A stretch of DNA of 64,000 bases from the sequence record PQ287642.1; one strand, written 5' to 3'. Shown here piece after piece: positions 2,226 to 55,316 of this stretch (position 1 is the stretch's first letter; the number at the start of each line of letters is the position of its first letter). Below the pieces are notes generated by a model. That model was not told the origin of the DNA. It made no database searches and saw nothing but the letters and a program-made list of their open reading frames with translations. The translations under genes and the position numbers were made by a program.

Positions 2226-2241
2226 ATTTTTGATCCTCGGA

Positions 2242-3176: not shown

Positions 3177-4430
3177 TTAGCCCTTGACGCAAACAATCTG
3201 ACGCAGGGTGTGGACGATCTCAATGAGGTCATCCTGAGCAGCCATTACGTCTTCAATGTTCTTATAAGCCTTTGGAGTCTCGTCGATCACGTCAATGTCT
3301 TTCCGGCATTCTACACCGGCAGTATCACGAGCGTGGTCAGCAAGAGTGAAAGTCTTAGCGGCTTGGGTTCGGGACATGACACGTCCTGCTCCGTGCGAAC
3401 ACGAACAGAAGGACTCGCGGTTCCCTTTACCTTTCACGATGAAGCTCTTCGCGCCCATCGATCCAGGAATAACGCCCAGCATACCCTCATCTGCACGCAC
3501 TGCGCCTTTACGAGTTACGGATACTTTCGCACCGAAGTGGTTCTCGAAGGAGACGTAGTTATGGTGACATTGCACAGCTGATAAGCTGGTATTGATTGGT
3601 CGACCCATGTAATCTGCAACTGCCTCGATAGTGGCGCGCATCATGATCGTACGGTTGAGCGTGGCATAACGCTGAGCCCAATGTACAGCTTCGATGTAGT
3701 CGCTGTAGTACTTGGTACCTTCCGGTAGATAAGCGAGGTCCTGATCAGGCAGGTTGATGTGGTAGAGCCGCATCTCCTCTTTTGCTTTCTCAATGAAGTA
3801 CCGACCGATTGCGTTACCGATCCCACGCGAACCCGAATGGAGCATGATCCAAACTCGATCTTGTTCATCCAGACAGATCTCTACGAAGTGGTTACCAGTG
3901 CCGAGGGTACCAGCATGGTTGAATGCACGGTTAGCAGCCTTACCCAGTTTCGGGTGTTTAGCCACGATGAGCTTCAGTTCCTCTTCAAGCTTCTTAACCT
4001 GAGCTTGGAGCTCCGGTTCGAGTTTCTTGTAAACGAGGTTGAAGTCACTCCATGTACCACGGTCATTCGGGCCACCATTGTCAGTACGACCATGGGGGAT
4101 ACGGGATTCTATTTTATAACGAAGATGTTGCAGACCATGAGTCATGTCGTTAGCTGTCAGATCAGTAAGCTGGCATGCAATCCCGCACCCAATATCGACC
4201 CCTACCGCAGACGGAATGATTGCACCCCGCGTAGCGATTACGGAACCGATGGTTGCACCGGTACCAAGGTGGACATCAGGCATTACAGCCAAATGCTTGT
4301 AAATGAACGGGAGTCCCGCGATGTTCTTCAGCTGACGTTTTGCATCAGCTTCAACAGGGACGCCTTTAACCCAAGCTTTAATTGGGAATTCATTTTGTTC
4401 GTTCAGCATAACGTATTTTTGAGTAGTCAT
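3177..4430 (-). CDS. rtcB: RtcB RNA 3'-phosphate/5'-OH ligase
   Basis: MPDVHLG, GVDIGCG, GTLGTGNHFVE, LHSGSRG, CHHNY, RKGA, IPGSMG, SCSHGAGR, DETPKAYK motifs. Confidence 0.97.
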   Translation of the reverse strand: MTTQKYVMLNEQNEFPIKAWVKGVPVEADAKRQLKNIAGLPFIYKHLAVMPDVHLGTGATIGSVIATRGAIIPSAVGVDIGCGIACQLTDLTANDMTHGLQHLRYKIESRIPHGRTDNGGPNDRGTWSDFNLVYKKLEPELQAQVKKLEEELKLIVAKHPKLGKAANRAFNHAGTLGTGNHFVEICLDEQDRVWIMLHSGSRGIGNAIGRYFIEKAKEEMRLYHINLPDQDLAYLPEGTKYYSDYIEAVHWAQRYATLNRTIMMRATIEAVADYMGRPINTSLSAVQCHHNYVSFENHFGAKVSVTRKGAVRADEGMLGVIPGSMGAKSFIVKGKGNRESFCSCSHGAGRVMSRTQAAKTFTLADHARDTAGVECRKDIDVIDETPKAYKNIEDVMAAQDDLIEIVHTLRQIVCVKG

Positions 4431-4459
4431 TGTAGACGCTCCGAGAGTTTTAAGGTTTA

Positions 4460-4538
4460 GGAATTCAACGATTTAACGTTGTGCCAAGGTCGGGATCGCA
4501 GAATTCCAAGGATAGGTAGAGTAATGTCATGCCTATCC
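4460..4538 (-). promoter_or_regulatory. Structured intergenic leader upstream of rtcB
   Basis: Inverted repeats GGAATT/AATTCC enclosing CAACG/CGTTG, plus GGATAGG/CCTATCC, in a 140-nt gap. Confidence 0.35.
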
Positions 4539-4569
4539 GTATTAGATAAGACTTTTGAGTAAATTGTCA

Positions 4570-5151
4570 TCAGTCCGATTCAACGGCCATGGATAACTCT
4601 TTATGTTTCCTTCGTCTTTCAATATCAGCAAACCATGGTCTTACACTTAACCATATTGCAGGCCAACTGAGAATAGCCGCTACAGCCATCCACACTGCAC
4701 TGAGTAGCACCCATGCGTCGTTACCATCGTCAACATCTCGTGGAGCTATGTCGAGTTGATAGTCAGTTCCAACGGGGACATGGTGATAAGTGTAATCACC
4801 TAGCTTAGTTTCGTATACGAAGGGGACACCTTTCATCTTCCCTTCCCAACGACCCATTAGCTCTGTGTAGATCCCATGTTTGTATTTGTGGGTCTCTTCC
4901 CATTTCCAGGTCAATACAACCTGGGTCTTACGTTTGGTTACGTAGTCAGAGAAGAATGAGTTGTAGACTGCACCACCCATAAATGCTAAGCAGATTAGGT
5001 AGAGCACCACACAACGCAGTTTAACCCACTTGGAGATTGGTACATACGGCTCTTGTTTCATAGTCATCGTACAGCCGATTGCGTTTGCATAACCCAAGGG
5101 ATTCCTTGATGCCATTGCATTTATTGCGGCTGCCTCCAGAGTTATACTCAT
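4570..5151 (-). CDS. Hypothetical membrane protein with two predicted TM helices
   Basis: Hydrophobic stretches CVVLYLICLAFMGGAVY and AWVLLSAVWMAVAAILSWPAIWL. Confidence 0.75.
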   Translation of the reverse strand: MSITLEAAAINAMASRNPLGYANAIGCTMTMKQEPYVPISKWVKLRCVVLYLICLAFMGGAVYNSFFSDYVTKRKTQVVLTWKWEETHKYKHGIYTELMGRWEGKMKGVPFVYETKLGDYTYHHVPVGTDYQLDIAPRDVDDGNDAWVLLSAVWMAVAAILSWPAIWLSVRPWFADIERRRKHKELSMAVESD

Positions 5152-5975
5152 TTAGGATTCTCATGGATAAGCTGGAACGTGTCGAACTTGTATTGATCAA
5201 CGAAGTGCCACGCGAGTTCACTCAGCTTAAAGATATCCGGACGTTCGTATTTACCGAAGTCGGGTTTCTCTTTAGCCAAATGGAAATCGATGAAACGGTC
5301 CAATACAGGGCAACGATCGATCAAGTCTTGTTCAGTGGAACCTACCTTACAGTTGACCAGTTCCTGAATACGTTTGTACAAGGTGGGATCAGACAGAATC
5401 GGTAGGAGTTCATAGAATACCATCGGTGGATGTTCACGACTAGTCTCAACCCACAATGCTGCTAACAGTGGACGGAGAGCATAGAAGTATTTCTTCATGC
5501 GGACTTTCTCATCCGACAGCCAACGCATCTTGGTTTGCTTGGCCATGGAGATATAGTGCATGAAGCTCGATTCGGGAATGAAGTGCTTGATAGCGTAATC
5601 ACGAATCAGTTTGTAATCCCATTCGTTCTTACGGTAAACGATCGGGGAGTTCAACCACTCCAACAGAGTCGGGTTAGACTTGTAAGCCAGTTGAAGTGTC
5701 TTGGTGATACTCCAACCAGCCAGATCGAGTTCCTTGGAAACCATCTCTTCGATGGTGTCACGACCTTCGTTATCAACCCGGACATAATGACTCGGATGGT
5801 TAACGTAGATGAAGCGAACATCGTAGTCACTATTAGTAGAAGCGAAACCCCAACCACGACTACCGGACTCACAGGCGTAAATGATCTTTACACCATACTT
5901 CTGTTCGATACGAGTTAACTCGGCGTCTATAACTGCATGCATCTCATCACTAACAGGGTGACGTGGATCCATCAT
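5148..5975 (-). CDS. RlaP/YcgL-like Pol-beta-superfamily nucleotidyltransferase
   Basis: IIYACESGSRGWGFASTNSDYDVRFIY, SNPTLLEWL, KKYFYALRPLL. Confidence 0.85.
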   Translation of the reverse strand: MMDPRHPVSDEMHAVIDAELTRIEQKYGVKIIYACESGSRGWGFASTNSDYDVRFIYVNHPSHYVRVDNEGRDTIEEMVSKELDLAGWSITKTLQLAYKSNPTLLEWLNSPIVYRKNEWDYKLIRDYAIKHFIPESSFMHYISMAKQTKMRWLSDEKVRMKKYFYALRPLLAALWVETSREHPPMVFYELLPILSDPTLYKRIQELVNCKVGSTEQDLIDRCPVLDRFIDFHLAKEKPDFGKYERPDIFKLSELAWHFVDQYKFDTFQLIHENPK

Positions 5976-28305: not shown

Positions 28306-29256
28306 ATGTTTGAAGTGCTGTTATCATTGAGTCAAAAGAAGCAAGCTATAGAGTATCCATTTTCTGGACCAGGAAGTAAATTCCTAATAAAGGGTAATGA
28401 GACACTTGGGTATTTCGGTCTAGTCGATTCGAAAGATATTTATTTTCGTGAACGGTTTATCGAACAGGCAGATATAGCCGACTATACCAACTCTATTGTA
28501 GGTTCATTCGCTAATCAACAATGGGTTAAATATTTCTGGATGGGTAAGGTTTGTTTTGCACCTTTATCTATCTACATGACCAACGTCTCATGGAAGGTTC
28601 TTTACGACAAAGGCCTTGTATTTGGAGACAACACGATTGGTCAAAATATTCCAAGTGGATATAATACCGTTCAAGATAAGTTCTATCATTTTACTGACGA
28701 TGAAGGGAGCTGGCAGTTTAGAATCCGTATGGGTCATCTAACTGAGAACCCATTCACTCCAACTAATAATGAAGACCCAACAAGTGAACTTGGTCAGGTA
28801 TTTACACGAGTGACTAATGGGTCTTGGGACAATAGACCCACAAGTGTTATCGGTCTTGGTAACGGTACATGGACAAAGGCATTGAATACAGCCCAGCGCC
28901 CAATGTATCAGTTTTACAACACAAGTATCACGTCTGTAAATAATAATGCCCCAACGAATAATGGTATTTGGCGTCCGGTATTAGAGCTGATTCCTAAAGA
29001 TGAATATCACCTAGTACCAATAGAAACGACTATTAATGCTTACAGTAATTTAGCCGAAGCTAGTATTATAACTAATACAGAAATCAGCTCTGGTGGAATT
29101 CAACCTATTATTCAGCTTACTTCACTACCAACTCCTGTAAGTATTGCTTATATTAGCAATGCCCCACAAGATGAAACGCTTATCGACTTGAACAGTATAT
29201 CGCGAAAGATAGATAAAACAGCTGAAGTTAGAATTAATAGCTTTAGTTTCACATGA
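28306..29256 (+). CDS. Virion/tail paralog 1 (phiKZ tail-tip-like family)
   Basis: GPG..LIKG....GYFG.V, WVKY.W.GK, VSW..LY..GLV, WRPVLELI. Confidence 0.75.
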   Translation: MFEVLLSLSQKKQAIEYPFSGPGSKFLIKGNETLGYFGLVDSKDIYFRERFIEQADIADYTNSIVGSFANQQWVKYFWMGKVCFAPLSIYMTNVSWKVLYDKGLVFGDNTIGQNIPSGYNTVQDKFYHFTDDEGSWQFRIRMGHLTENPFTPTNNEDPTSELGQVFTRVTNGSWDNRPTSVIGLGNGTWTKALNTAQRPMYQFYNTSITSVNNNAPTNNGIWRPVLELIPKDEYHLVPIETTINAYSNLAEASIITNTEISSGGIQPIIQLTSLPTPVSIAYISNAPQDETLIDLNSISRKIDKTAEVRINSFSFT

Positions 29257-29268
29257 GGATGATTTAAC

Positions 29269-30255
29269 ATGGCATTTACAATCAATCTACGTTGGGTAAA
29301 CCCAAACGACGCGTCCGTAAGTATTAAAATTTATCGATCGGCAACAATGATTGATAGAAACAACCCTGGTACACCAATTGCAGAAGTCAATGGTGACGTT
29401 GATGGTTATGCTGACGAAGGGCTTACATATGGACTTATTTACTACTACATGTTTGAATCATCGAAAGATGGGGATGTAGCTAAATCTCGTGTATTCCAGT
29501 TCCATGCGGTACCTTTCACTGGACCTGGTCCACAGCGCTTAGTTGCAGGTAACATCAATTATGGTTACTACGGTTCTCTTCCCACTGTTGAATTTATTTC
29601 GGACAGTGAACTAATCGCTCGTTGTGGTTTGTCCTGGAACGCAGCTAATAATGCTGGTCAACGTTGGCATAAATTCGCATGGAAAGGACGGACTTTCTAT
29701 GTACCTGAATATTCCATCGCAACTGGTTCCCTGTACTGGATGGACCTCTATAATGCGGGTCTAGTATACAGTAAGAACGCAGTACCATCCGCTGTCCCCG
29801 GTGTTACTACTCCTGTTCCTCAGGGCAAGCGAATCAATTTTGCTCTATCTGAATTTGAAGTATCTTTGCCTTCCGTTCTAGTTGATCACGATGATCCTAA
29901 TTCTGTTAGTGATCTATCGTCATCCGCAGTGACTGCATTAGGTAATTCTGACCCATCTCTCAGTAATGGTACCGTCGAGTTATTTTTAGCCGGTATGACT
30001 AGTCAGTTCTATGCTAATAAAACATTGGAACGAGTTAACGTAACCGGTGATAATGAGGCTACACGTGTTAATAGTAAAGCTATTCTAACACGAGATACTC
30101 CAACCACTCAAGCTTCTGCATATATTTCGCGAAATACGAGTGCAACGAAAGCTTCGGCTTTTGTACCTCAACATACAAGTAGAACCTCAAGTTCAAACAT
30201 TTGGTTCCCTGTACTGGAACTTATCCCTGGTAACTTCGTTGACTTTGAGGTGTAA
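29269..30255 (+). CDS. Virion/tail paralog 2 with N-terminal FN3-like domain
   Basis: LRWVNPN..IYRS..Y.D..YYY then the shared GPGP..GYYG..WHKF..W.PVLEL domain. Confidence 0.75.
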   Translation: MAFTINLRWVNPNDASVSIKIYRSATMIDRNNPGTPIAEVNGDVDGYADEGLTYGLIYYYMFESSKDGDVAKSRVFQFHAVPFTGPGPQRLVAGNINYGYYGSLPTVEFISDSELIARCGLSWNAANNAGQRWHKFAWKGRTFYVPEYSIATGSLYWMDLYNAGLVYSKNAVPSAVPGVTTPVPQGKRINFALSEFEVSLPSVLVDHDDPNSVSDLSSSAVTALGNSDPSLSNGTVELFLAGMTSQFYANKTLERVNVTGDNEATRVNSKAILTRDTPTTQASAYISRNTSATKASAFVPQHTSRTSSSNIWFPVLELIPGNFVDFEV

Positions 30256-30257
30256 TC

Positions 30258-31208
30258 ATGGGTATTAAAGTACAATGGGGTTTGACCAATGATCGAGAAG
30301 CAGTCACATTTGATATTTTTCGATCTGAAACAAAATTCGATGAATCGACATTACCTAGTGTATTAGTTAATGTGCAAGGAAACATCAAAGAGTACGATGA
30401 TACAACAGCTATTAGAAATAAAGTCTACTATTACTGCATCGGTTCTAATTTTGAGAATGGTGATGTAACCTATTCCAAAGTGGTTGCACTTGCTAACATG
30501 CCTTACACTGGTTTCGGACCAAATACCCTTCGTTCTGGAGACTATGAATTAGGTTATTTTGGTGAGGTTCCAGATTTTGTATTACCTGGTGAAATAACAG
30601 ATCTTTGTGGACTCAGTCTTTTGACTGATATTAGAATTCCACCTGTAACGGATTTCATTTGGCATAAGTTCGTTGTAGATGGGCGCATTTTCATGCTACC
30701 AATTCGCTACGTGGCTTATAACCTACGTTGGGCTGATGTCTATAATGCGGGTTGTGCTTGGTCAACACCTGGAGACCATTGGGATGATCTTCCTGCTCCT
30801 GTTAAGACTGTAGTTGGTACGCCAACCGAACAAGGTAAGACTGTCATTATTAAGAATCATAGTTACAGAGTTGGCCTGCCTACATTTGCTGGTGAACGAT
30901 CACTCGCAAGTATAGCTGCTGGACAGGCTGTCTATGATCAGTTTAATGATCTACTTGGCCTCACATGGGATCGTCTAATTGCATATGCATCGAACATCAA
31001 TAAGCCTAACCTTAAAACACGCGTTAACTCGACTTCAACGAACGTTGTAATGACGGGTGGCGCACCTGGTTCGGGTATCTTCATGACGCGTACATTCGTA
31101 GGTGAAACCCAGTCTATATTGGTCAGAGGTGCAGCGCTTATGAACGTTTCCAGTACTCTGGTAAATAGCGCGGCTGCATTCATGCCAATTCTAGAACTAG
31201 AGCTATAG
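30258..31208 (+). CDS. Virion/tail paralog 3 with N-terminal FN3-like domain
   Basis: Same architecture; ends FMPILELEL. Confidence 0.75.
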   Translation: MGIKVQWGLTNDREAVTFDIFRSETKFDESTLPSVLVNVQGNIKEYDDTTAIRNKVYYYCIGSNFENGDVTYSKVVALANMPYTGFGPNTLRSGDYELGYFGEVPDFVLPGEITDLCGLSLLTDIRIPPVTDFIWHKFVVDGRIFMLPIRYVAYNLRWADVYNAGCAWSTPGDHWDDLPAPVKTVVGTPTEQGKTVIIKNHSYRVGLPTFAGERSLASIAAGQAVYDQFNDLLGLTWDRLIAYASNINKPNLKTRVNSTSTNVVMTGGAPGSGIFMTRTFVGETQSILVRGAALMNVSSTLVNSAAAFMPILELEL

Positions 31209-31216
31209 GTGATTCG

Positions 31217-32170
31217 ATGATTAAAGTAGGCTTTTCGGTTACAGGTGATATTGTTGACTTAAAAGCTTATCGTTCTACAGAACCATTTGATGTGAATAAT
31301 CTTCCAGCTGTTTTTAAGCAGCTGGATGTTACTGATCGAGAATTTGTAGACGATACCGCTTTGAAAGATACACCTTATTTCTATCTTGTTATTGGTACGG
31401 ACAATACAGGTTCTTTCGTATTGAGTGATGTAAAAGCTATTTGCATTATTGATTACACTAATAAAGGACCTGGTCCCGAAACTCCCGTATTCGGTGACTG
31501 GTGGATTGGTTACTTCGGAACATGTCCAATCGAAGATGTTTTTGAGGTGGCTGATTTTAAAACAAATTTGGCTTTACCATCTAACTTCAAGAATACTGTT
31601 GATCAACCAACAGAAGCATGGAAAATACAGTTCAAAGGTGTAACGTATTACATCCCGAACAGAGTTCCATATTCTGGAATGTCATTCATGGATGTTTATA
31701 GGGCAGGTGTTCTCCTTGATACGGTAGAAGACGGTGTTGGTACTTTACCATCATCTCTCACTAATCCAGCTGTAATGCAGGGTAAGATCTATTCTAGGAA
31801 TGGTAATAGTTTTGCTGTTGGGTGTATCCCACATGGTGATAAGGTAGTATACACCAATGCTACTGATGCGATGGTAAGTCTCCATGTGATGAATGATCTA
31901 GCTTTAGATACCTTCGAACGTCTATTCAATACAGCAGTAAACCCAACTGGACAGTTGTATTCTGGTTATCAACGCAGTCGTTACGGTAATCAGTTACCAT
32001 CGTCTATAGCTCCAGGTAATGGCTTGAATATTTTCTATAAAGCTGTTACTGAAGATAACCGTTGTATCCAACGTGGATTTAGCACATCTATCGCTCACCA
32101 GCTTGACAATGCTTTTACAGCTTCCGGTGCTGGGCGCGGATTCAATCCAGCATTACGTTTGATTCGATGA
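31217..32170 (+). CDS. Virion/tail paralog 4 with N-terminal FN3-like domain
   Basis: Same architecture; ends FNPALRLIR. Confidence 0.75.
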   Translation: MIKVGFSVTGDIVDLKAYRSTEPFDVNNLPAVFKQLDVTDREFVDDTALKDTPYFYLVIGTDNTGSFVLSDVKAICIIDYTNKGPGPETPVFGDWWIGYFGTCPIEDVFEVADFKTNLALPSNFKNTVDQPTEAWKIQFKGVTYYIPNRVPYSGMSFMDVYRAGVLLDTVEDGVGTLPSSLTNPAVMQGKIYSRNGNSFAVGCIPHGDKVVYTNATDAMVSLHVMNDLALDTFERLFNTAVNPTGQLYSGYQRSRYGNQLPSSIAPGNGLNIFYKAVTEDNRCIQRGFSTSIAHQLDNAFTASGAGRGFNPALRLIR

Positions 32171-32438: not shown

Positions 32439-35400
32439 ATGTTAGACTCATTCCGTTCGATATTTGGCGGCTTGACAGTCAAAGAAACTGAAACGGAGAT
32501 TATCATCTCTGGTATTCGTGGATTCGACATAGTCCGAGATATCAGTAAGCATTGGAAGACTTCCAAGATTACAACCAACTTGTTCAACAACATTGGTCGG
32601 AACTCATTAAGCTTCTATAAGTTCTTTGCTCCTGAAGTAATGTACATGTTGGAAAACATTGTCTATTACCGTTCTCGATATACCTCTGTAAAAATGATCG
32701 CTGCTATTAAAGATGCGCTTTTACAGAATACTTGGCTTGCCTCTACTAAAGCCATTGATGAGAAATCAGTACAAGGGCGACTTAATCTAGCTAATCTGTC
32801 TCGATTAAAATTTGATCCAAAACCGTATCAATTAGAGTATTTCAAGAACTACACATATCGGCTAGATCAATACAATCTAAATGGTGACTTAATTGCCGCG
32901 GCCGCCGGTACGGGTAAATCTCTTCGTTTGGACGCCGACATCAAGATACCAGGTGGCTGGATTAAAATGGGTGATGTTAAAGTAGGCGATATTGTCACCG
33001 CTTGGGATGGTACCCCTACACGTGTGACCGGCGTGTACCCACAAGGTAAGCGTCAAACTTTCACGATCAAGTTCAAAGATGGGCGGGAAGTAGATGCATG
33101 CGATGAACATCTTTGGCGCGTCTATAAATACGACTGGACACGATATGGAGGAGATGGTTGGAAAATAATCAATACCAAAGAACTCTTTGCTTACATGCAA
33201 ATGCCGAGTTTTAAGAATCGTTTGTATATCCAGCTTTGCAAATCCGAAGATACTCCAGCCCTAGATCTTCCTATTGATCCATATAACCTCGGTGTTATCT
33301 TAGGCGATGGATGCCTATCTAAAGGTATCGATATTACTAAGGGTGATCAAGAAATATTTGATCTGGTAAAACTTCCGGATAACCTTAAGTTTGTTACTCG
33401 CGATCATAAGACGCGTGGTATCGTTGCTAAAGACGGGGAGAAAAACACCTATCTCGATATTTTTCGTGAACTCGGATTAATGGGTAAGACAGCCCTTGAT
33501 AAGTTTATTCCTGACCAGTATCTCCATGGATCGACGGAACAACGTTTGGCAATCATCCAGGGCTTAATGGACACCGATGGTACCGTAGATGAGAATAGTA
33601 ACGTTAGCTTCTGTAGTAGTAGTTACCGTTTGGCTACTCAATTCCAATACCTGATTAGATCGTTAGGCGGCATTGCTAAGATTCAGGTTAGAGAGCCGCA
33701 TTACACTTATCTTGGTGAACGTCGTGAAGGTAACGCGGCATATCGGGTTAACGTTCGTTTCCCTGAACCCAGCACGTTGTTTAGATTAACTCGCAAACGC
33801 GAACGATGTAATGATAACGGTCAGTATGCCGGTGAAACACTCAAGCTTAAGATCACACACGTAAATCTTTCCGAAAGGATTGAGACGCAATGCATTAGCG
33901 TTGAGCACCCTGATCATTTGTTTATTACGAACGATTTCATAGTGACACATAACACATATCTTACTTCAGCTATTGCCGAGATGCTTGATGCTGAACTCAT
34001 TGTTGTAATGTGCCCTAAGAATGCTTTGGATCTAGTCTGGTTAGATTCCCTGAAAGAGATGTTCCATAAGCCGCAAACAGTTTGGCATACGTTCGAACCT
34101 AATATGCCCTACAAAGGACAGCGTTGGATCGTCTGTCATTACGATGCAATGGATAAGGTAGTAGAACTTCTTAGAAACCGTAATATAGTTGGTAGCAAAC
34201 GTACTGTGACGATTCTAGATGAATCGCACAACATGAATGACCCTAACTCTACGCGGACTAAACTTTATCAACTCATTGTAAAGATGGTCGGTTCTCGTAA
34301 TAATCTTTTAGCTTCGGGCACGCCTGTAAAAGCATTGGGTGTTGAACTGATTAACTTACTGCGAATAGTAGATCCTCTATTCACTCCGCAGGTAGAAGAA
34401 CGCTTCAAGAAGATGTATGGTAAAGAAGCGTCTAAAGGACTCGATATAATCAGACATCGATTAGGTCTTGTATCCTACAAGGTAGAGAAACAAGAACTCG
34501 ACCTAGAGCCCCCGATCATGCGTCCTTATCCAATTAAAATTCCGAATGGTGATGACTTCACCCTCCCGGCTATTAGAAAGGTTATGGAAGCATTTATTCA
34601 AGAACGCTGGGCTTACTACAAAAAGCGGAGACCTGAAGATGATAAACGCTGGGCAGAGTTCTGTGGACTCCATCGAAAAACCCTCAAAACAGCCGCACAG
34701 GAAAGAGCCTTCAAAGAGTACTTGGATCTGGTCAAGTATGTTCAACAGATCCCTGATCCACGCTTTGCAGGAGAGGAAATTAAAGCAACGAACCAATACG
34801 AGAAATTAGTATTTGGACCTTCCCTTCCAAAGCAATTCATCCATGAGTTCAGAGACATCAAATCGGTTATTAAATATACTAACCTTAAGATTCAAGGTGA
34901 ATGTCTTGGACGTGTGTTAGGTGGTAAACGTATTGAATGCCACGTGGCAATGGTCCCGTATGTCGACTGGGTTGGTATTACAGAATCTACTCACAAGAAG
35001 ACGATTATGTTTACTAGCTTTGTTGAAGCAGTGGAAGCAGCAGATGCACATTGTGTTAAGCTAGGTATGAAACCACTAGCCGTTTATGGGAAGACTACTA
35101 ATGAACTGGCTGAAATCGTTAAACGCTTTGATTCGGGTAAGGATCTAAATCCACTCAATGCTACATATGCTTCTCTATCGACAGCTGTTCGCCTGACAAT
35201 GGCAGATACCTTGATTCTATTGAATAGCCCATTCAGAGCTTATATTCTGGAACAGGCTATATCTCGTGCTTATCGTTTAGGTCAAGATTCTCAAGTTGTT
35301 GTTTACCAGTGTTCTCTCGATACTGGGGATATCCCAAATATCTCTACCCGATCGGCTGATATTCTTAAATGGAGTCAGGATCAAGTAGAAGCGATTATGG

Positions 35401-35588
35401 GTATCAAGTCTCCATTTGAGATTGGAGAGGCAATGGAAGACTATGGTGATGAAACACAGTTTGATGAGAACAAAGTAATCCATAGTGTTCTTCAGAAAGC
35501 ATTCGAAAAATTCGACATCGAGATTCCGACAGTTGATTTCGAGATACCCCTTAAACCCAAATCTAATGTTCCCGCATATTTGCGGTGA
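32439..35588 (+). CDS. SF2 (SNF2/DEAD-like) helicase interrupted by an intein
   Basis: Walker A AAAGTGK|T, LDESH, ASGTP, late motifs (TAVRLT, QAISRAYRLGQ). Confidence 0.9.
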   Translation: MLDSFRSIFGGLTVKETETEIIISGIRGFDIVRDISKHWKTSKITTNLFNNIGRNSLSFYKFFAPEVMYMLENIVYYRSRYTSVKMIAAIKDALLQNTWLASTKAIDEKSVQGRLNLANLSRLKFDPKPYQLEYFKNYTYRLDQYNLNGDLIAAAAGTGKSLRLDADIKIPGGWIKMGDVKVGDIVTAWDGTPTRVTGVYPQGKRQTFTIKFKDGREVDACDEHLWRVYKYDWTRYGGDGWKIINTKELFAYMQMPSFKNRLYIQLCKSEDTPALDLPIDPYNLGVILGDGCLSKGIDITKGDQEIFDLVKLPDNLKFVTRDHKTRGIVAKDGEKNTYLDIFRELGLMGKTALDKFIPDQYLHGSTEQRLAIIQGLMDTDGTVDENSNVSFCSSSYRLATQFQYLIRSLGGIAKIQVREPHYTYLGERREGNAAYRVNVRFPEPSTLFRLTRKRERCNDNGQYAGETLKLKITHVNLSERIETQCISVEHPDHLFITNDFIVTHNTYLTSAIAEMLDAELIVVMCPKNALDLVWLDSLKEMFHKPQTVWHTFEPNMPYKGQRWIVCHYDAMDKVVELLRNRNIVGSKRTVTILDESHNMNDPNSTRTKLYQLIVKMVGSRNNLLASGTPVKALGVELINLLRIVDPLFTPQVEERFKKMYGKEASKGLDIIRHRLGLVSYKVEKQELDLEPPIMRPYPIKIPNGDDFTLPAIRKVMEAFIQERWAYYKKRRPEDDKRWAEFCGLHRKTLKTAAQERAFKEYLDLVKYVQQIPDPRFAGEEIKATNQYEKLVFGPSLPKQFIHEFRDIKSVIKYTNLKIQGECLGRVLGGKRIECHVAMVPYVDWVGITESTHKKTIMFTSFVEAVEAADAHCVKLGMKPLAVYGKTTNELAEIVKRFDSGKDLNPLNATYASLSTAVRLTMADTLILLNSPFRAYILEQAISRAYRLGQDSQVVVYQCSLDTGDIPNISTRSADILKWSQDQVEAIMGIKSPFEIGEAMEDYGDETQFDENKVIHSVLQKAFEKFDIEIPTVDFEIPLKPKSNVPAYLR
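32919..33953 (+). mobile_element. 345-aa intein with LAGLIDADG homing endonuclease
   Basis: Starts SLRLDADI, block B ACDEHLW, LGVILGDG and QGLMDTDG motifs, ends IVTHN followed by Thr+1. Confidence 0.92.
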
Positions 35589-45385: not shown

Positions 45386-45403
45386 GCCTCCCCGAAGGGA
45401 GGC
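45386..45403 (-). terminator. Intrinsic terminator ending the late operon
   Basis: GCCTCCC-TTCG-GGGAGGC followed by TTTATGTT. Confidence 0.85.
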
Positions 45404-45410
45404 GTTTATA

Positions 45411-45992
45411 TCAGTTACCTTCGTAGGTACCTTCAGTGCCTTGTGCTTGACGGCGCTCCAATCGAGCACGAATCAGTTCACGAGCAGCGTTCATATGGAA
45501 CAGTGCTTTGGCATTTTCTTCACAGGCAAACTTACCCGATTGGAAACCTTCGAATACAATGATCGAAGCAGTCAGCAGATCTTCAACAGTTACCCCGTTA
45601 ATACCAACTTCAGGGATTACTCCGTTTTGAAGCAGGATAACCAGTTCGAGTTTATTATCACTCGGTTCAGCAGCTTTGTTTGTAGATGCATCGAAACCAG
45701 AGATCACAATACGTTTTGGTGCGCCAGACATTTCATCGACACCATAGGCATCAATAGTCTTACCACCGGAACTACCGGATACCTGACCATCTTCTAGTTG
45801 TTCAACGGAGATATCTACCGTAGTACTAGCCTTAACATCATCCGGTTGGGATTCAGCATTAGCATTATCCACATCCAGATTACCTTGGTCGAGATCTTTA
45901 ACCTCAGTTTCAGATTCGACATTACTAGCATCTACCGGTTGGGCGACACCATCTTGGCTCTCTACACTAAGAGCCCAGTCCAGACCTTTCAT
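45411..45992 (-). CDS. tad1: Tad1-like immune-signal sponge with acidic N-terminal extension
   Basis: C-terminal QNG...GV..EDLL...FQ.G.F...EN..AL.H...A......R...R...EGT matches the recalled Tad1 consensus. Confidence 0.75.
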   Translation of the reverse strand: MKGLDWALSVESQDGVAQPVDASNVESETEVKDLDQGNLDVDNANAESQPDDVKASTTVDISVEQLEDGQVSGSSGGKTIDAYGVDEMSGAPKRIVISGFDASTNKAAEPSDNKLELVILLQNGVIPEVGINGVTVEDLLTASIIVFEGFQSGKFACEENAKALFHMNAARELIRARLERRQAQGTEGTYEGN

Positions 45993-46001
45993 CAGTTCAC
46001 C

Positions 46002-46472
46002 TTAAGAGTAGCGGACTTTAACAATTTGCAGAAGCAGTTCTACAGCGTAGTTACCATCAGCCTTAGCGATACCCGGCATTTGTGCACGAATAGCGACCAT
46101 GGCAGCAGCCTTACGCTTCAGAATATTACGTTCTTTGCTGTTCTCTACTTCGGCTACACTGCCGATCAGTGCATTGACTGCGATGTTCTCAATGGAAGAG
46201 TTGATACGAGCACCAGCAGTATATTTGCGAACAAGTTTACGAAGCTCAGCTTCCAGGTTCTGACCACGGTACTGTTCAGCTTCCAGATAACCAGAAGCCA
46301 GTTCGGCGAAGTTACGAACACCGGACTTACCAACCAGCAGATTGGTCAGAGTATCTACCGGAAGAGTCGACGCGAGTTGAGCCAGGTCATTACCTTTGAT
46401 CTCAGAGCGAGCCAGTTCCAGTACGGATTCAACACCAAGGAGTTTCAGAGCGATTTTGCGAACGATAGACAT
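46002..46472 (-). CDS. Hypothetical protein
   Basis: Start MSIVRK; late operon position. Confidence 0.65.
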   Translation of the reverse strand: MSIVRKIALKLLGVESVLELARSEIKGNDLAQLASTLPVDTLTNLLVGKSGVRNFAELASGYLEAEQYRGQNLEAELRKLVRKYTAGARINSSIENIAVNALIGSVAEVENSKERNILKRKAAAMVAIRAQMPGIAKADGNYAVELLLQIVKVRYS

Positions 46473-46488
46473 TATTGCGTTTCCTATA

Positions 46489-48465
46489 TTAAAAGCGATC
46501 AGAAGTTTGAGCGAAGGTAGAGACCGTACGGGCGACCTCACCATCGAGAACCCAAGACATTAGGTTCGAAGGACTACGCCAAGACTTGAAGCTTTGAACT
46601 GCACGAGTCAGGTTAAGATTCAAACGTTTACCAGCGTAATAGAAATCTGCCCAGGATTGTGACGTTAGAGTCGACACGTAATCTTGGAACAGACTTTGTT
46701 CATCCCACACCGCTCCATCAGTAAGAGCTAGCGCAGTAGCAATACCACCATCACCTGCAACGGCTTCACCGGCTGTAGCCGAAATAGCACGACCAGCAGT
46801 ACCCAACCAACTCGGACTAGCAAAGCCAGCCTTCAGTGGGATATGCATTAGCTTAGATAGATCTTTAACACTGAAGGTTACTTCACAACCAAGCATTTCG
46901 TGTTCAGCGTTCCAACCAACGTTACCGACACCGCGACGGATCTGAATGCTATCCACGATCCCCAGTTGTCTCTGTACTCGACCTTTATGGAAAATTTGAC
47001 AGATGAACGGAGAGGTGTAAGCACTTCGACCAGCTGACCTTGGTAATCCCATTGGGAGAATCATGGCTAGTGGTACGTATATGTTCATGAACCTGGATAT
47101 TTTATTTCCATAAGGGGAGATCAATTGAACAGTATACGAAGCAGATGGTAAAGAAGCCATCGCTGATTCCCAGTACTCTGGTGCATCTACGAAAGCCGCG
47201 CCTGCTAATGTCTCAAGTCCAGATAAGTTAACAGAGTCTAGTGCTCCGGAAATAAATCCTTTAAGCATGTCTGTAACCGCACCAACGCCTTCCGTGATGT
47301 TACCACCCATGAAGTCGAACGATGCAGCTCGACCTTCCCCTACCTTCGTATTCAGTGTTTGTACAACACCTACATCTCGTGTAGTGTTAGTAAAGGATTC
47401 AGATACTTCACCATTATAGTCAACACGGAATGTAACGAACTGAGAACCGTCGCGCTGTGCACCTACAACGAAGTCATATACGTTCTTCAATTCACCCCAA
47501 CTGCTAAAACTCTCGGTATCAATAACACCATTCTTTTCGGATGGTTTCTTATCAGCTTCCAGATACTTCAAGAAATAGTCACGTGCGTCAGCGCCTGGTT
47601 TAGGGTCTGTTACAGCTTTGGCCATTTCAGATTCAATACCAGCCCGAAGTTCGGCAAGGGTACGCGCCTTCTCTGCCATTGCACGCATTGATTTTTGAGC
47701 TTGGTCCGACATACGTTGCGTACGTCCAGCCAAAGACATTACATCGACGCCACCATCTGGACGGAAGAAACCTGGGAAGATTTCGTGCATACGTCTAACA
47801 TCATCTAATCCTACTCGATGACCTGGGTCTTCTAGAGGACGTTGAGAATCATCGAGAATACGCGGGACCATACCCATAGCGATAGCGAACTCGTTAGCTA
47901 GCGTATTCACAGACGACCAGTATGCATGCATAGTCGGTTTAAAATAGAACCACTTCGATGGTTGTGATTTAGTCAAGAAACTAATAACACGAGATACGCC
48001 AGTTACCCCAAGAATAAATGGTTGTAGCGGTAGAGTGATGAAATAACCAGTCACGTTACCTAAGTTATACCAAAGGTCAGATGTAACACCAGTATTAGCT
48101 AGGCCCGCTGCCGAACGATCATAGAAGTTCGTAAAGAACGAGGTCCAGCTTGAATAACGTGGAACACCAAACGACATATGGACTTCTTGTTTAGTATCGT
48201 CGTGTGCTTCTGAATAGTAACGACCCATACCTAAGAAACGATCTTCGTAGGTGCGGCCTCGACCAGGCTGACGAATATCAGCATAGCGTGTGTATTGTGG
48301 GAGAGGGTTGATAGCAAAACTACCACCCAGCGACGTATTTGTAAATTTGAAAGCAGCCGAGTTAGCATAACGCCGTTTGGTCTGAGAACCATACGAGTTC
48401 TTATTGTCATTAATAGGCAATAAGAAAGCTTGGCGCAACCAAATAGGCTTAACATCTGTTGCCAT
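46489..48465 (-). CDS. Virion structural protein (baseplate-type, phiKZ gp182 position)
   Basis: 658 aa, directly downstream of the gp181-like gene; synteny. Confidence 0.65.
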
Positions 48466-48494
48466 TTTGATTTCCCTTCTTAACGGAAAATAAA

Positions 48495-48512
48495 GCCTCC
48501 CCGAAGGGAGGC
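48495..48512 (-). terminator. Intrinsic terminator
   Basis: GCCTCCC-TTCG-GGGAGGC followed by TTTATTTT. Confidence 0.85.
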
Positions 48513-48520
48513 TCCATTGA

Positions 48521-51500
48521 TTAAGTTAGCGAGAGCGGCGACGGTCGATTTTGAGCCGAGGTCGATCTCATTAACGTGGAGGTCATACTATTATTTCCTC
48601 CAGCTTGGGTTTTCGAAGCTTCTTTGGTACCACTGTCCTTTTGTTCGTTCAATTGTACCAAACGCTTGAGATGATCACGCATCTCAATTAACGTCTTAAG
48701 CTGCTCAGCTTGGATATCATCGATCTGTTGAGCCTTCTCGTTATTACGACGTACTTCAGCTTGACGAGTTGAATTATACTGCTGTGCTGCTTGAAGAGCT
48801 GCTTCTTGTTGAGCTTGGACCACATTACCGCCACTATCAGCAGATGGATTAGCACCGCTAGTAGTTGTCCCACCCACAGGGTTCATTGGGGTAATACCTG
48901 GAAGTACCGGCGTTTGGGCAGCAGTACCAGTGGCACTGTAAGCTTCTTCGCGAGCAACAGCTGCATTGCCTGCATTGTTACTATCATCAGTATTCCATAG
49001 TTCAGCAGCAGATGCTTTGGCATTAGCCTTAGCTTGTTCTTCTGTTGCCTCATCAGTGGTCATTGTCTTACCAGCTTCCTGTGTAGCTACAGAGCTACCT
49101 TCAGCCCCACCGCGATGCTTCGCGATCTTCTCTTCGAACATTTGATAGATTTCCCCGAGTGTACGGGGTTGTCCACCTTTCTTGTAGAAGATAGGTCGGT
49201 TAGCAGATGCGGCTTCTGGGAAAACAGATGCGCCGATAGTATCCTGATTACGAGTCAAGAACTTACGAGCTCCACCTGGACCCATGAAGTGTGCGATATA
49301 TAGGTCAACGTCCGTAGGATCACGACCTAATGCATCTTTGAGGTAAGTGTAGTTATCTTTAAGGAAGCATGCACCCATTAAGGCGTTGATACGTGGATCA
49401 ACACGTAAACTACGCTGGGCGTCGTCTGGAGGTATACCGAACTTGGAGCCATGTTTCGCCAACATTGCGTCCCAGGTACTATTGATAAACTGGAACCATC
49501 CGGTTGCAGACGATGTCTTAGCTTTGACAGTATAATCAAAACCAGACTCAAGTGATGCAAAGATGAACAGCAGCTCTACAGGAATACCGACCATCGCAGC
49601 AACTGCTTGGAATGTTTCAGCAGCAGCTTGACGAGACTTGTTAGCTTTCGGATATGGAATCTGTTCCCAAGCGCCACCGTTACCCTTCGTCAGAGTTCCG
49701 TATGTACGACCTGTTGCAGATACCTCACCAGCCATACCAAGCTTGTATTGCGCAGTCGCTGTAGCGTCGGACATGTAGTCCATTGCTTTAGCGCCAGCTG
49801 CCTTGGTATTATTCCATGCATTACTCACTGTTTCTTTAGTAGACTCCCAAGTATTCGAGATAGAAGCCATTGCCCTCTCGGCAAAGCTGCCACCTGCGGC
49901 TGCACTTTGTGTTCCAGCTGCTTGGTCACCAGCAGATTGAGTCGGCGTAGACATGATGTCTTTGCTTGCATCTTTCTTCAGTTGTTCCAAATCAGCTTCA
50001 GCCATTTTCTTGAGATCGTCTTTACTTCCCTTAATCGGGAAAATGGAATCAACCTGCCATACGCTAGAGCCATCAAAATCAGTGACGCCCAGTACAGCAT
50101 TACCCACGATAACGGCATCGCTGGGTTTAAGTTTAGATTCCATGTTCGCAATGGTTGTTCCTTGAGTCGAACTACGCATTGCTCCGTAGTAAGCACGAGC
50201 AACAGGCATGAATCGACCAACGAACCAATCGTAGTAAGCCGAACGATCTTCGTCACTACCAACGATATCCTTACCAAACAGCGGTGCTGTTTCTTGCATG
50301 ATAGATTCTAGGTCACCACGGAATTCAGGAATACCACCCTGAATAGATAGACCATCAAATACCATTGCCTCAGCATTTAGAAGAGGATAGACATTGTAGA
50401 AACTCAGTACTTCTAAACCGTAAGCACGCATCCGGATGGATTGGAGTGCAGTTAGTTTAGTGGTAGCTGCCGAGGTTGCGACTATGGGTGCACCAGTTGA
50501 ACCACCTAGGCCAGGGAAAGCTTTCTTAGCAGCAGCCAAAGGCATTGCTGATTTAGTAGGATCCATTGGACTCGGTGTAGTTTTACCAGTTGCAGTATCC
50601 GCCGCTTTCTTGGCGATATCCTGAGCTTTAGTAGCTACTTCGGTATTAGCCGCTGTAGCCGGTACAGCATCTTCTTTCTTCTCACCCGCTTTATAGCGAA
50701 CGTATAGAGCTTTCCATAGTTGATCGGCTGCTGGGATGGTATCTTCCAATTCACCTTCTTCAGAGAATGGATCGACACGATACTGCATCGGTGTATCACC
50801 AGATACAGAAATCTTAACAGCTTTAACTAATGGTCCTTTCAGTTCTTGTGGGAACTTACTATCGATATCAACGAGTTTAACTTCATTCTTCTTGAGTTTA
50901 GCTAATGCCTTAACCCAAGTCAGGAAGACAGGACGGAAACGCATTTCCAACCAGCGAGACATCCGCATTACTTGGACTTCATTCTTAACGTCAATACCAA
51001 GAATGTCAAGAATAGCCTTACCACCAACTCCACTGATATTAAAGTCAGGTTCTTCTGTCCGTTCAGTTACGCGATCAAAAGCATCTTCAAGCGCAGAGAC
51101 TTTCTGTTGCTGATCATGATCAGTGATACCGTATTGCAGCATTCGAAGACGACGGAACTCTGCCCTCTGGTCATTCATTTGACCAAAGATAGGTTTCAGG
51201 ATATAACGTGCAGTTAATTGTCCAAGTGGATTAAGACTCATCGCAGTCAGGATACCTGTCTGCTTTGCATCCATTCCATCTTTACTATAACCATACGCCA
51301 TGGCGCCTGTACCTACAGCAGCAGCGGTACCTCCAAGGAGCCAAGGAACTGCGCGTTTAGCAAGGCCCATTAAACGACCTTTAGCGCCACCTTTCATACC
51401 TCCGCCCATAAGCACGTCGAACGCACCAGAGCCTTCTTCACCTTCGGTACCGGTAAGTTTACTGAAGATACCTTTCAGTCCATCGGATAACCCCTTCAGG

Positions 51501-54500
51501 ACTTTATTTTCAGCTTTACCAGTATCCCCATCTCCTTTCCCCTTCAATTTATCCATCAAGCCAGCAGCGCCTTCTTTGGCCTTTTCTGCTTTATCCTGCC
51601 AACTACCAGCTCGGAGCTTTTCTGGAACTTGTGCTTGAAGAGTTTCAAGAATGCGACCCAATAGTACTTGATCAGTTGTTTCGAAGTCTTCGTATGGTAC
51701 GCGTTCAAAGATACGTCCAAGAACGTTACCACCCGCTTTAGCGAAACCACCTAACACTTTCTTAGCTGCACCTCCATAGAACTTACCCGTCTTCTTCAAT
51801 GCCCAACCCATGTACTTCATGGAAGCATCGATATACTTCGAACGAGCAGCGCGAATACCACGCCATACAGTCTTACGGATGATACCTTTATTCTTAGCTA
51901 AGATATGTTTGGTACCGTCGTAGTTCTTAAGGTCTTTATACAGAGATGGTTCTATTACAGGTTCGCCTCTCTCGTTAAAGATCGTGCCATACACATCACC
52001 AAAGTTTTCAATGACGCGACCTTTATCATCGAAGTACTTACCGGCATTAACTAGTCTTCGTTCGAGTACAGGTACATCATCACCAGGTAAATAAGCGTTC
52101 TGAGTTTCAATCGCGAAGTTGAATAGGGCCGAACCCATACCGATCGCTGTCTTAGCACCAAACTTCAGTGCGTTCCACGCTAAGGTAGATGTATTCGTTG
52201 CCATGAACTTGGCACCCCAACCCGCTACATTTGCTAGACGCCGACCTGTCTTGGTAAGACGCCAACGTTTACGAGTAGCACGCGACCATAGACCGGAAGC
52301 TAGTTCCTTAGCAGTTGCGATAATAGATCCATTCTTATCAAGTACATCACCTTTGATGTCTTGCATCGAATTAATCTGGTCACCATCTGCGTTGAAGTAT
52401 TCACCGTTCTTTAGACCACGAGCAGAGATAGTGGGTTCTTGCTCACCATCCAAATACCAGTCGTGCTTATCATCTTCAGCTGCTTGTTTTTGCTGTGCGT
52501 TTTCACCTTCAGCAAACTGTTGAGCAGGAGGCGTTTGTCCACCCATTAAAGCACCGCGGATTTTATCCGCTGCGTTGCTCATGAAGGCAGGTAATTCAAG
52601 ACGCATTCCTTTCTTATCAAACAGACCTTGTGCAACTTCAGATGCTGTTAGAACCGTCGTGCCAGTTGTAGAAACAACCTTACCGGTAATGTCGTGTACA
52701 GATTCGATAATCTTTTTGGTATTAAAGTCAACAAGGTTACCTTGAACAAAATCAATACCTTTAATGATGGGTTCATTTGGATTAAACTTTGTGAACACAT
52801 CAATGATCTTATCTTTCTGACCGATTGCATATTGGGTTGGATCATTCTGGAACTGATCCATGTGTTCTCCAAACTTAGCACGTGTCTTAGAATAGAGATC
52901 TTGACCCATTACATTCGCATCATTCCAAGCTCCTTGCAGACCAGCAACGTAAGGACCAAATTGGCCATTACGCATGTTGTTAGCAAAGTCATGGATACCG
53001 GCGCCGTGCTTATTGTTCAGGTACTGGAATTTCCCCTGTGCAATACGGCTGTAGCGAGATAGTTCTTTCTTGATTCGATCTTCTTGTGGTGCATGTTTAT
53101 TTCGGAAACGACGCATTGCATTAAGCGCATTGGCTTTAGCTGCACCTGGGTAAGCAGGACCAAAGAAGTTCTTATCATTCATATCACCAGAAGCTTCAGG
53201 TTGATAGTCACCATTAACCCATGGGTTGGTATCAGTAACGCCAGAGCGCATGATCTCCCAAATACGGTTATAGTTTATCCTATCTTGTCCTTGTTCAGTA
53301 ATGATGATACCGAGCATCCGTAAAGGTTCAGTTTGACCAGCATTAATAAGACGATGTACTTCTTTAACTGGGTCACGACTTACAGAACGAATGTCAAGGA
53401 AGGCACGAGAGTATTCATCCCGTAGACGATGGTTTTCAGCATTATCTGCCATTTTACCTTTATCGTCATACTGGAACTTACTCTTAAAGAACCTTTGAAT
53501 TTCATCCGTGGTTGTGGCATCCAAGCCATCCATATAACCGCCGGATTTAAGGTAAGCTTCTGGATCAAATCTACGGTTTGTAGACGCATCGCGAAGCATA
53601 CGTTCACCAAGTGCCTTACGTGCAGCTGGAGAAAGTTTACCCTCTTCATCCATCAAGTTCAATGTGTCATTAATGGCACCACTCGCACTTCGAATTGCTG
53701 CTGCTGGAATAATCTTCTTCTGAAGACGATCATCCGACAGCGATTGAACTTCGAATCGACCAGTTGTAATATCGAATACTTCACGCTCGATATCATCGCG
53801 ACCAGTGCGAATCATTCGCAATTCTTGAAGCTGGCGAGACAGGTAACCTGGGATGACTTCAACGATACTACGCTGCGTCAATTGGTTAAAGGCCGCGCCT
53901 TGATCAATTGTTTGATAGTTTCCGTTTTCCAAACGATCGTTCATGTGGTACTGAGGAACGAATGGCATAATAGCATCACGAATAACGCCACGGAAACCAT
54001 AAGTGTTTTGGTAGTTATTAACGAACTCTTGTAGATATGCTGGAACGTTGTCTAGGGCATACCCTACCTGATGATGGCGTCCACCAAAACGGTTGGATAG
54101 TTTTTCCATAGTCGGACGAACTTTACGACCTGCCCATGGAACAATAGACGATTTAAGGATATCGGCACCGTATTCACCGGCGATTTGACCAGCGAACTTA
54201 TAGCGATTATCCCAAACGGATGAACCAGCCATATCGCCCATGCGTAGACCGGCTACGATCTCCGATAGACGTCCGCCCAGGCCGCTGGCAACACGTTCGT
54301 TTACTTTGTTACCATAACTACCCAAGAAGCCATGAAGGCCCTGTGCAGCTCCGCCAGCTAGGCGTCCGAGCATGTTGCCCCGGCCGCGACCTGAACCAAA
54401 ACTGGTTAGATCGCCAACATTGCCTTTCTTGTAGTCTGGTAAGCCGGTATTACGAACTAATGCTTCATAAGCCTTATTCTGCAATTCAAGATTAGCTTCT

Positions 54501-55291
54501 TGTACTTTAACAAGATCCCTAATACCCATGTAGGTACGGAACTGAAGTTCAAGGCCTTTACGTTGAATTCCATAATTAACTTGTTCGTTATATCCTACAA
54601 GACGAGTTAGACTATCTACAGCCATCCCCATCGAACGGGACATAAAGTCAAAGCGTCCAGCACTTACTTTATCACGGATTCCACGTTCTGCTCTTTCAAC
54701 GGCAGCGCGGGCAACTGCACCCTGTTCACTACGTTGGAAGTTTTCTCTGCTTACCAGCGTATTCTGATCGAGAGCAGCTTTAATTACATTTGCATCATCA
54801 TTTTCTTGCCGACGACGACGAATAGCGATTTGGTCCCTTTGGGAATCCACTTCGTACTGATATTGTTCAACCTTTCTGGTGAGCGTATCAGAGATATTTT
54901 CGTATAAGGCATTTGGAATGCGATCTTTTAACTGGGGTAGATAATCCTGTGCTTTACGACCAAGGTAATCTAGGTCGGATGCATTGACTCTTTCGACCGT
55001 ATCTTTGATATCGGTTACCGAAGCCATTACATCATCATAGGCACCAAAAAGACGCGCGAAACCATCAGGCGCTGCGCTTCGTAAGAAATTCCTTACGATG
55101 TCTTTGGTTTTCAATCCACCGAGGAAGCCCTCTTTCAGACCAGATTTGAAATCGGTTACTGGATCACCAGGTTTGGTGGTTTCACCGACATCATCAAACA
55201 GGTCGTCCAGCTCATTAAGGTCAAGTACACCAATTCTGTTCTGGGCATTCATCCCAGCAGGTTTTGGCAGCTTGGTCTTTTTTGTAGCCAT
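48521..55291 (-). CDS. Giant tail protein with C-terminal lytic transglycosylase (phiKZ gp181-like)
   Basis: About 2256 aa; SLT motif [26 protein letters not shown]; hydrophobic segments; divergent from vRNAP genes. Confidence 0.85.
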
Positions 55292-55316
55292 GGTCAACTC
55301 CATCGATATAAACAAT

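Follow-up and report, generated by a model that had tools for sequence, protein, structure and literature searches.

The 64,000 nucleotide (nt) stretch of DNA analysed in this work (from sequence record PQ287642.1; hereafter the window) carries on its minus strand, at positions 45411–45992, an intact open reading frame (ORF) that begins with ATG and encodes a protein of 193 amino acids (aa). A first-pass annotation, made from the sequence alone, had described the product of this gene as a Tad1-like signal sponge fused to a propeptide of the kind found in phage head proteins and possibly delivered with the virion. The window DNA is 100% identical to that of Pseudomonas phage HHBS36_1 and approximately 90–99% identical to that of BRkr, phiHQ, PA1C, and PS119XW, all of which belong to the jumbo-phage genus Pawinskivirus and are kin of phiPA3 and phiKZ. 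Genes that are 100% identical to the one considered here are present in HHBS36_1, BRkr, and phiHQ, and the gene is labelled "hypothetical protein" in HHBS36_1, PS119XW, PA1C, phiPA3, and their relatives. The ORF list, phmmer searches, and PHROG matches (PHROG 23843, E 1.9e-77) support its identification, by comparison, as the gene for a Tad1 precursor in which a Tad1-type sponge lies behind an acidic leader, orthologous to gp184 of phage phiKZ and gp280 of phage 201phi2-1. The idea of a packaged sponge has already been published for phiKZ gp184, and the present work is not a discovery of it.

The Tad1 domain, as delimited by profile search, AlphaFold2 (AF2), and Foldseek, comprises residues 65–193 (45414–45800, minus strand) of the 20.5 kDa full-length protein and consists of a beta-sheet and two long helices (residues 136–152 and 158–183). 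In a phmmer search of the PDB, the top match is phiKZ gp184 (8y6v chain I; E 8.2e-36) and the remaining matches are all Tad1 chains, including CmTad1 (8kbb; E 8.2e-8) and CbTad1 (7uav and relatives; E 0.012–0.016). A family profile built from 21 members and searched against PDB chains matches phiKZ gp184 with E 8.5e-66 and the Tad1 chains with E 7e-19 to 3.9e-16, the latter aligned over residues 5–123 of the 125 residues of CbTad1. On the strength of these alignments the resemblance to Tad1 is real and far above chance. Because the profile spans this much of CbTad1, the homologous part of the 193-aa protein amounts to about 120 aa (residues ~65–190); the likeness to Tad1 noticed in the first-pass annotation therefore stands, and the Tad1 string quoted there agrees with the CbTad1 chain sequence, while the extent given for it, the last ~75 aa, was too short.

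The fold of the protein leads to the same identification. The AF2 model, based on 26 homologs, has a predicted local distance difference test score (pLDDT) of 86–96 in blocks across most of residues 80–180, with a drop around residues 121–130, and contains strands at residues 79–83, 94–98, and 116–121 ahead of the two helices. When this model is compared with the PDB by Foldseek, the top 20 matches are all Tad1 structures (E 2.9e-7 to 2.9e-6; template modelling (TM) score TMt 0.62–0.74; prob 1.00), and match 21 falls to E 0.77, so that profile and structure searches both match Tad1. The crystallised proteins in question (CbTad1, 7uav/7uaw/8smd; CmTad1, 8kbb–8kbd) share with the 193-aa protein their fold and the residues of the pocket for glycocyclic adenosine diphosphate ribose (gcADPR) and dinucleotides. 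They differ from it in that they are only 23–28% identical, are leaderless, are made inside the cell rather than delivered, and have Arg and Thr at the trinucleotide site where the 193-aa protein has Glu and Phe. With the Acb2 sponges the protein shares the sponge principle and the helical element described in Pfam as the "Acb2/Tad1 hairpin" (PF24729), although Acb2 belongs to a different overall family and no Acb2 chain in the PDB was matched by profile search or Foldseek. The PF24729 tag is present, in precomputed form, on the identical database cluster (P0001) and on 40 of 45 other database relatives. A local Pfam scan gave no match for the 193-aa protein or any of its relatives, even at E 10; since it was silent for all members of the family, the PF24729 model is evidently absent from it, and this result does not count against Tad1. 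A PADLOC scan likewise gave no match, as is expected from a collection of models for defence rather than anti-defence systems. One match in NCBIfam, to nitrosocyanin (E 4e-5), was rejected as compositional, since its score is 23 bits where 143 are required and it lies on the low-complexity leader.

PhiKZ gp184 has been published as a cleaved, packaged, and injected protein, and the proposal of a packaged, matured, and injected sponge is supported by way of this orthology. The two proteins are ~54% identical over the Tad1 domain, both begin with a W-x-x-S-x-E sequence and contain the FACEEN, R...R, and GTEGT motifs, and their genes occupy the same place, after gp181, gp182, and gp183 and ahead of a thymidylate-kinase block. 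Among the minor proteins of the head, gp184 has verified cleavage sites for gp175, the phiKZ prohead protease, and is located on the inner capsid wall (PMC11297242). Gp184 co-fractionates with inner-body proteins, and a C-terminally FLAG-tagged form, followed by western blot, is packaged and then injected into translation-blocked PAO1 (PMC10449902). A transposon sequencing (TnSeq) preprint, in which "gp184/Tad1" is non-essential, describes its N-terminus as wedged in the capsid and its C-terminus as injected after release by the head protease (bioRxiv 10.1101/2025.11.23.690004). According to a 2026 review, phiKZ injects Tad1, which blocks the cyclic-oligonucleotide-based antiphage signalling system (CBASS) and Thoeris (PMC13282480). 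For phiKZ Tad1 both of these last sources refer to Li et al., Nature 635:719 (2024), a paper whose preprint version makes no mention of phiKZ. Presence in the virion is known, for the orthologs of the 193-aa protein, from phiKZ and 201phi2-1; the cleavage, the injection, and the published assignment to Tad1 are all known from phiKZ.

The closest counterparts of the 193-aa protein in architecture are 201phi2-1 gp280 and phiPA3 gp217, which are 189–199 aa long, show 53–60% full-length identity to it, and have the same synteny, but belong to other genera (Serwervirus and the phiPA3 group, respectively). Among these, gp280 is annotated as "identified using mass spectrometry". A wider parallel is provided by the anti-defence protein IPI* of phage T4, which travels in the head, loses its short N-terminal targeting sequence to the prohead protease, and is injected with the DNA. 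IPI* differs from the 193-aa protein in sequence and fold, in its target (a modification-dependent restriction enzyme instead of a signalling molecule), and in the protease family and cleavage motif involved.

The N-terminal part of the protein, residues 1–64 (45801–45992, minus strand), is by composition, pLDDT, and ortholog comparison an acidic, disordered leader and a putative propeptide. As the first-pass annotation had remarked, it is acidic, with 16 D/E against 3 K/R residues and an isoelectric point (pI) of 4.05, and its pLDDT in the AF2 model is 40–58 (<50 for residues 28–70), with the exception of a short predicted helix at residues 2–9. The S-x-E sites pointed out in the same place are also present, SVE occurring at residues 9–11 and 62–64, and it is their positions that are conserved. 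Candidate prohead-protease site 1, L-S-V-E at residues 8–11 (45960–45971, minus strand), lies in a column that reads [S/G]-[L/V/I]-E in all 14 long orthologs, after a conserved W. Candidate site 2, I-S-V-E at residues 61–64 (45801–45812, minus strand), marks the boundary between the leader and the Tad1 domain and lies in a column that reads [S/G]-x-E in 13 of these 14 orthologs, with phiKZ gp184 as the exception. The sequence that separates the two sites drifts among the orthologs. In phiKZ gp184 and the metagenomic protein P0041, the counterpart of ISVE 61–64 is a G-H-E and a G-F-E, respectively, at the equivalent boundary, directly after an insertion discussed below. The cleavage motif of gp175 is S/A/G-x-E, refined to LSxE (PMC10449902), and LSVE 8–11 fits the refined form, which suggests that the protein may be cut there. 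Cleavage would most likely occur after E11 and E64, and a cut after E64 would give a product of 129 aa and 13.7 kDa that is co-extensive with free-standing Tad1. The gene for a suitable enzyme, a Peptidase_S80 prohead protease of the phiKZ gp175 family (E 4.8e-97), is located at 126080–126913 of the HHBS36_1 record, ~80 nt past the end of the window. A scan of the ORFs in the window for W-x(2,3)-[SGA]-[LIVM]-E matched the Tad1 gene only and revealed no second ORF with this N-terminal motif.

The leader is found in the jumbo-phage orthologs of ~190–207 aa and is missing from free-standing relatives of 125–148 aa. Its distribution was placed in a broader context by a search with the Tad1-domain profile against 1.84 billion proteins, which matched 5,275 cluster representatives with E <= 0.001, of which 2,895 reached E <= 1e-10. 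Motifs were scanned in 148 of the best 150 matches (P0049–P0196) and were readable in 81. In 40 of these 81 there is an N-terminal extension of at least 40 aa (about 50–320 aa long), most of the extensions outside the jumbo phages being non-acidic, and an acidic leader with W-x-x-[S/G]-x-E occurs among the scanned matches only in the jumbo-phage group. These varied extensions, mostly non-acidic and without the jumbo-phage leader motif, indicate that Tad1 also occurs in fusion with many further N-terminal parts that are uncharacterised. Leaderless relatives (viz. Bc431v3 orf166 of 126 aa from a Bacillus phage, the 133-aa homolog of the Agrobacterium phage OLIVR5, and the 125-aa metagenomic protein P0043) are located in modules for replication or nucleotide metabolism. 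The leaderless Tad1 homologs of Bastille-like Bacillus phages carry the label "putative structural protein"; this label was rejected as a transfer by similarity onto a 126-aa leaderless protein of the replication module, Bc431v3 orf166 (L003 2866–3246) being flanked by the genes for a single-stranded DNA-binding protein (SSB) and a UvsX-like recombinase, and it is probably misleading.

The principal difference between phiKZ gp184 and the 193-aa protein is that gp184 is 230 aa long and has an insertion of ~40 aa (residues ~50–110) between the leader and the Tad1 domain. This insertion is absent from the 193-aa protein as well as from the phiPA3 and 201phi2-1 orthologs and is shared only with P0041. 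In a model of P0047, a protein of the phiKZ type, it forms a helix (residues 51–68) and a small beta module (residues 82–100). The part of gp184 modelled in 8y6v chain I amounts to only 34 residues, and in a Foldseek comparison these match the P0047 model in 34 of 34 columns with 97% identity and a TM-score of 0.83. Their placement was examined by means of the positions of nine differences between P0047 and phiKZ gp184, a match of 33/34 being required; this is possible only for stretches that start at residues 1–5, 55–75, 144–177, or 182–197. Gp184 has been stated to consist mainly of beta-strands (PMC11297242), and when this remark is combined with the allowed starts, the 34 capsid-wall residues most likely correspond to ~69–108 of phiKZ gp184, inside the insertion and not in the Tad1 domain. 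PhiKZ gp184 may accordingly release its Tad1 domain while a short stretch of it stays behind on the capsid wall, and the 193-aa protein, which has no wall piece, may be pure cargo.

These observations bear upon the possibility that proteins of this type are chiefly minor building blocks of the capsid, belonging to its vertex complex, in which the Tad1 fold was co-opted for structure and the sponge function was lost. The label "putative structural protein" on several Bacillus-phage homologs would agree with such a role, but it is a similarity transfer and the gene there lies amid replication genes. Moreover, the modelled gp184 residues most likely fall in a part that the 193-aa protein lacks, and the AF2 model of the latter, with its confident Tad1 domain, gives no match to 8y6v chain I in Foldseek. 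The residues of the gcADPR pocket do not vary within the clade, although a protein with a purely structural role would have no need of them, and phiKZ orf184 is non-essential by TnSeq (bioRxiv 10.1101/2025.11.23.690004). We regard a purely structural role as very unlikely.

The position of the gene is consistent with the end of a late structural operon, as had been proposed. Eight nt past its stop codon (45411–45413, minus strand) is a hairpin that resembles an intrinsic terminator (45386–45403, minus strand), with a 7-bp stem that includes 6 GC pairs, a 4-nt loop, and a T-rich tail; it is palindromic and scores on the plus strand as well. At the other end, the ATG lies 9 nt after the stop codon of the upstream ORF, leaving no space for a separate promoter, and the sequence directly after that stop codon contains a GGTGA (45997–46001, minus strand; read from the sequence) that is similar to a Shine-Dalgarno sequence and lies 4 nt ahead of the ATG. 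The upstream string of co-directional genes, defined from ORFs and PHROG matches, extends over 46002–55315 on the minus strand. It includes a 2264-aa tail-associated lysin similar to phiKZ gp181 (48521–55315; PHROG 3201, tail protein with transglycosylase), a 658-aa virion protein similar to gp182 (46489–48465; PHROG 3181/20401, virion structural protein), and a small ORF in the position of gp183 whose start is uncertain (46002–46544; ORF list). This last ORF is 180 aa long in HHBS36_1, where it overlaps the upstream gene by 56 nt, and 156 aa long in PS119XW. Downstream of the Tad1 gene are small unknown genes and a gene for thymidylate kinase, and the order gp181-gp182-gp183-gp184 ... thymidylate kinase is common to phiKZ, PS119XW, 201phi2-1, and HHBS36_1. 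In 201phi2-1, gp276 and gp277 are also annotated as found by mass spectrometry.

The coupling of the gene to virion genes is one of several facts that favour a packaged protein over an ordinary late cytoplasmic Tad1, in which the acidic N-terminus would be a disordered tail or have another role, such as solubility, and which would be neither packaged nor injected. Such a protein would be compatible with the origin of the virion evidence in orthologs rather than in the phage of the window, with the missing capsid-wall module of phiKZ gp184, and with the frequency of varied, mostly non-acidic N-terminal extensions in the Tad1 family. Against it, 201phi2-1 gp280, the ortholog noted as detected by mass spectrometry, has the same leader architecture, likewise without the insertion, at 53.5% full-length identity; different genera retain W-x-x-[S/G]-x-E and the second S-x-E although the intervening sequence drifts; and late synthesis alone would not supply the sponge in time to stop an early abortive response. 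A protein confined to the cytoplasm therefore seems improbable to us, if slightly less so than the purely structural role.

The residues of the 193-aa protein that are likely to contact ligands were located by HMMER alignments onto the residues named in sections 6–7 of the Li et al. preprint, and they fall within residues 150–181 (45450–45545, minus strand). CbTad1 F82, N92, R109, and R113, which form the pocket common to gcADPR and cyclic dinucleotides (Li et al. preprint), align with F150, N160, R177, and R181, and these pocket residues are therefore conserved. N160, R177, and R181 occur in all 21 members of the clade, 19 of which have F or Y at position 150. On the basis of these alignments we expect that binding of gcADPR, and possibly of cyclic dinucleotides, is retained. 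A different pattern is seen for CbTad1 R90 and T97 (CmTad1 R88 and T95), which contact the phosphates of cyclic trinucleotides and also take part in hexamer formation (Li et al. preprint). These align with E158 and F165 and are not conserved; of the 21 clade members, 19 have E at position 158, two have Q, and none has R, while the residue at position 165 varies among them and is T in none. The residues of the hexamer interface are also largely different from those of the crystallised Tad1s. The first-pass annotation had suggested that a divergent segment equivalent to IVRDR may change the range of ligands. This suggestion is unsupported, since the segment, with which helix 1 begins, lies outside the named ligand contacts; in the alignments, the ligand-relevant difference instead appears at the cyclic-trinucleotide site (R90/T97 to E158/F165). 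Because the phosphate-binding Arg is replaced by Glu, weak or no binding of cyclic trinucleotides is predicted at the canonical site; in our expectation this function is lost or altered, and so, perhaps, is the hexamer.

It follows that the protein may be packaged and injected as proposed and still differ from the crystallised Tad1s in the signals that it binds, perhaps as a dimer or another altered oligomer that sequesters gcADPR only or a different signal. The Glu of the 193-aa protein and of 19 of the 21 clade members at the position of CbTad1 R90/CmTad1 R88, together with the Phe, variable across the clade, in place of the partner Thr, points in this direction, and among the motif-readable matches Arg at the trinucleotide position is in a minority (10 of 81). 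On the other side, the TnSeq preprint and the review have phiKZ Tad1 countering both CBASS and Thoeris, perhaps in summary of the family, and the conserved pocket for gcADPR is also the one that takes up cyclic dinucleotides, so that activity against CBASS could be independent of the trinucleotide site. We consider an altered ligand range to be only a little short of an even chance. A more specific proposal joins this idea to the missing insertion: the orthologs that have a leader only (those of the phage of the window, phiPA3, and 201phi2-1) would be free cargo targeted by the N-terminal helix and LSxE alone, and the clade with FACEEN would be without trinucleotide binding and perhaps without the hexamer, its sponge being a specialist for Thoeris (gcADPR) rather than a broad antagonist of Thoeris and CBASS. 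This combination is tentative and, in our estimation, rather doubtful.

Taken as a whole, we consider it likely that the gene encodes a precursor composed of a leader and a Tad1 domain that is packaged, cleaved by the S80 protease, and injected, and that sequesters gcADPR. The precursor would be produced late, alongside the upstream genes for the tail lysin and virion proteins, and taken into the prohead, where the Peptidase_S80 prohead protease would cleave it at the conserved S-x-E sequences, most likely those ending in E11 and E64. The free Tad1 of ~13.7 kDa would remain in the head and, at ejection, enter the cell along with the DNA. There, ahead of all phage gene expression, it would sequester Thoeris gcADPR, and possibly some cyclic dinucleotides of CBASS, in the conserved pocket at the dimer interface, which would keep ThsA, the NADase effector of Thoeris, off. 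Several considerations weigh against this interpretation. Packaging, cleavage, and injection in the phage of the window are supported by analogy, being carried over from the orthologs, and binding is predicted from the conserved pocket residues. The number of S/A/G-x-E sequences in the protein is not above that in shuffles (6 observed vs. 5.1 +/- 1.9 expected), and because the count is at chance level the conservation of their positions was used as the informative evidence instead. The 193-aa protein probably lacks, with the insertion, the part of gp184 that holds its only wall-bound residues, and its targeting to the prohead would have to proceed without them. Lastly, E158 and F165 at the trinucleotide and hexamer positions may alter its oligomeric state.

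Several other genes in the window are of interest in their own right. At 459–3129 (minus strand), a 613-aa nicotinamide phosphoribosyltransferase (PF04095, E 8.9e-34; PHROG 448, E 2e-175) adjoins a protein with the N-domain of ribose-phosphate pyrophosphokinase (PF13793, E 2e-10), and the two look like a pair for the salvage of nicotinamide adenine dinucleotide (NAD+). Such a pair could offset the NAD+ depletion caused by Thoeris-type effectors and so add a further layer of protection to that of the Tad1 sponge. At 3177–5975 (minus strand), an RtcB RNA ligase (PF01139, E 1e-128) is located close to an RlaP nucleotidyltransferase (PF10127, E 1e-88), forming an RNA-repair pair that is possibly aimed at host defences that cleave tRNA or other RNA. 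On the plus strand, four tandem paralogs of 316–328 aa (28306–32170) all match the virion-structural PHROGs 1062 and 3589, and a 1049-aa helicase-like protein (PHROG 62, E 3e-136) adjoins a 1016-aa virion structural protein (32439–35588). The phiKZ helicase gp203 is processed and packaged in the head (bioRxiv 10.1101/2025.11.23.690004).

The immediate use of these results is practical and not conceptually new: the "hypothetical protein" of HHBS36_1, PS119XW, PA1C, phiPA3, and their relatives can be annotated as a packaged Tad1 ortholog, which is of value for the annotation of therapeutic Pseudomonas jumbo phages. Two further points are likewise modest: a natural variant without the capsid-wall module could help to separate the packaging signal from binding to the wall, and the Glu of this clade at the position of the trinucleotide-binding Arg gives a clear prediction on the range of ligands. 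In biological terms, a sponge delivered ready-made with the genome would blunt Thoeris or CBASS signalling before any phage gene is expressed, a principle that is established for phiKZ gp184/Tad1.

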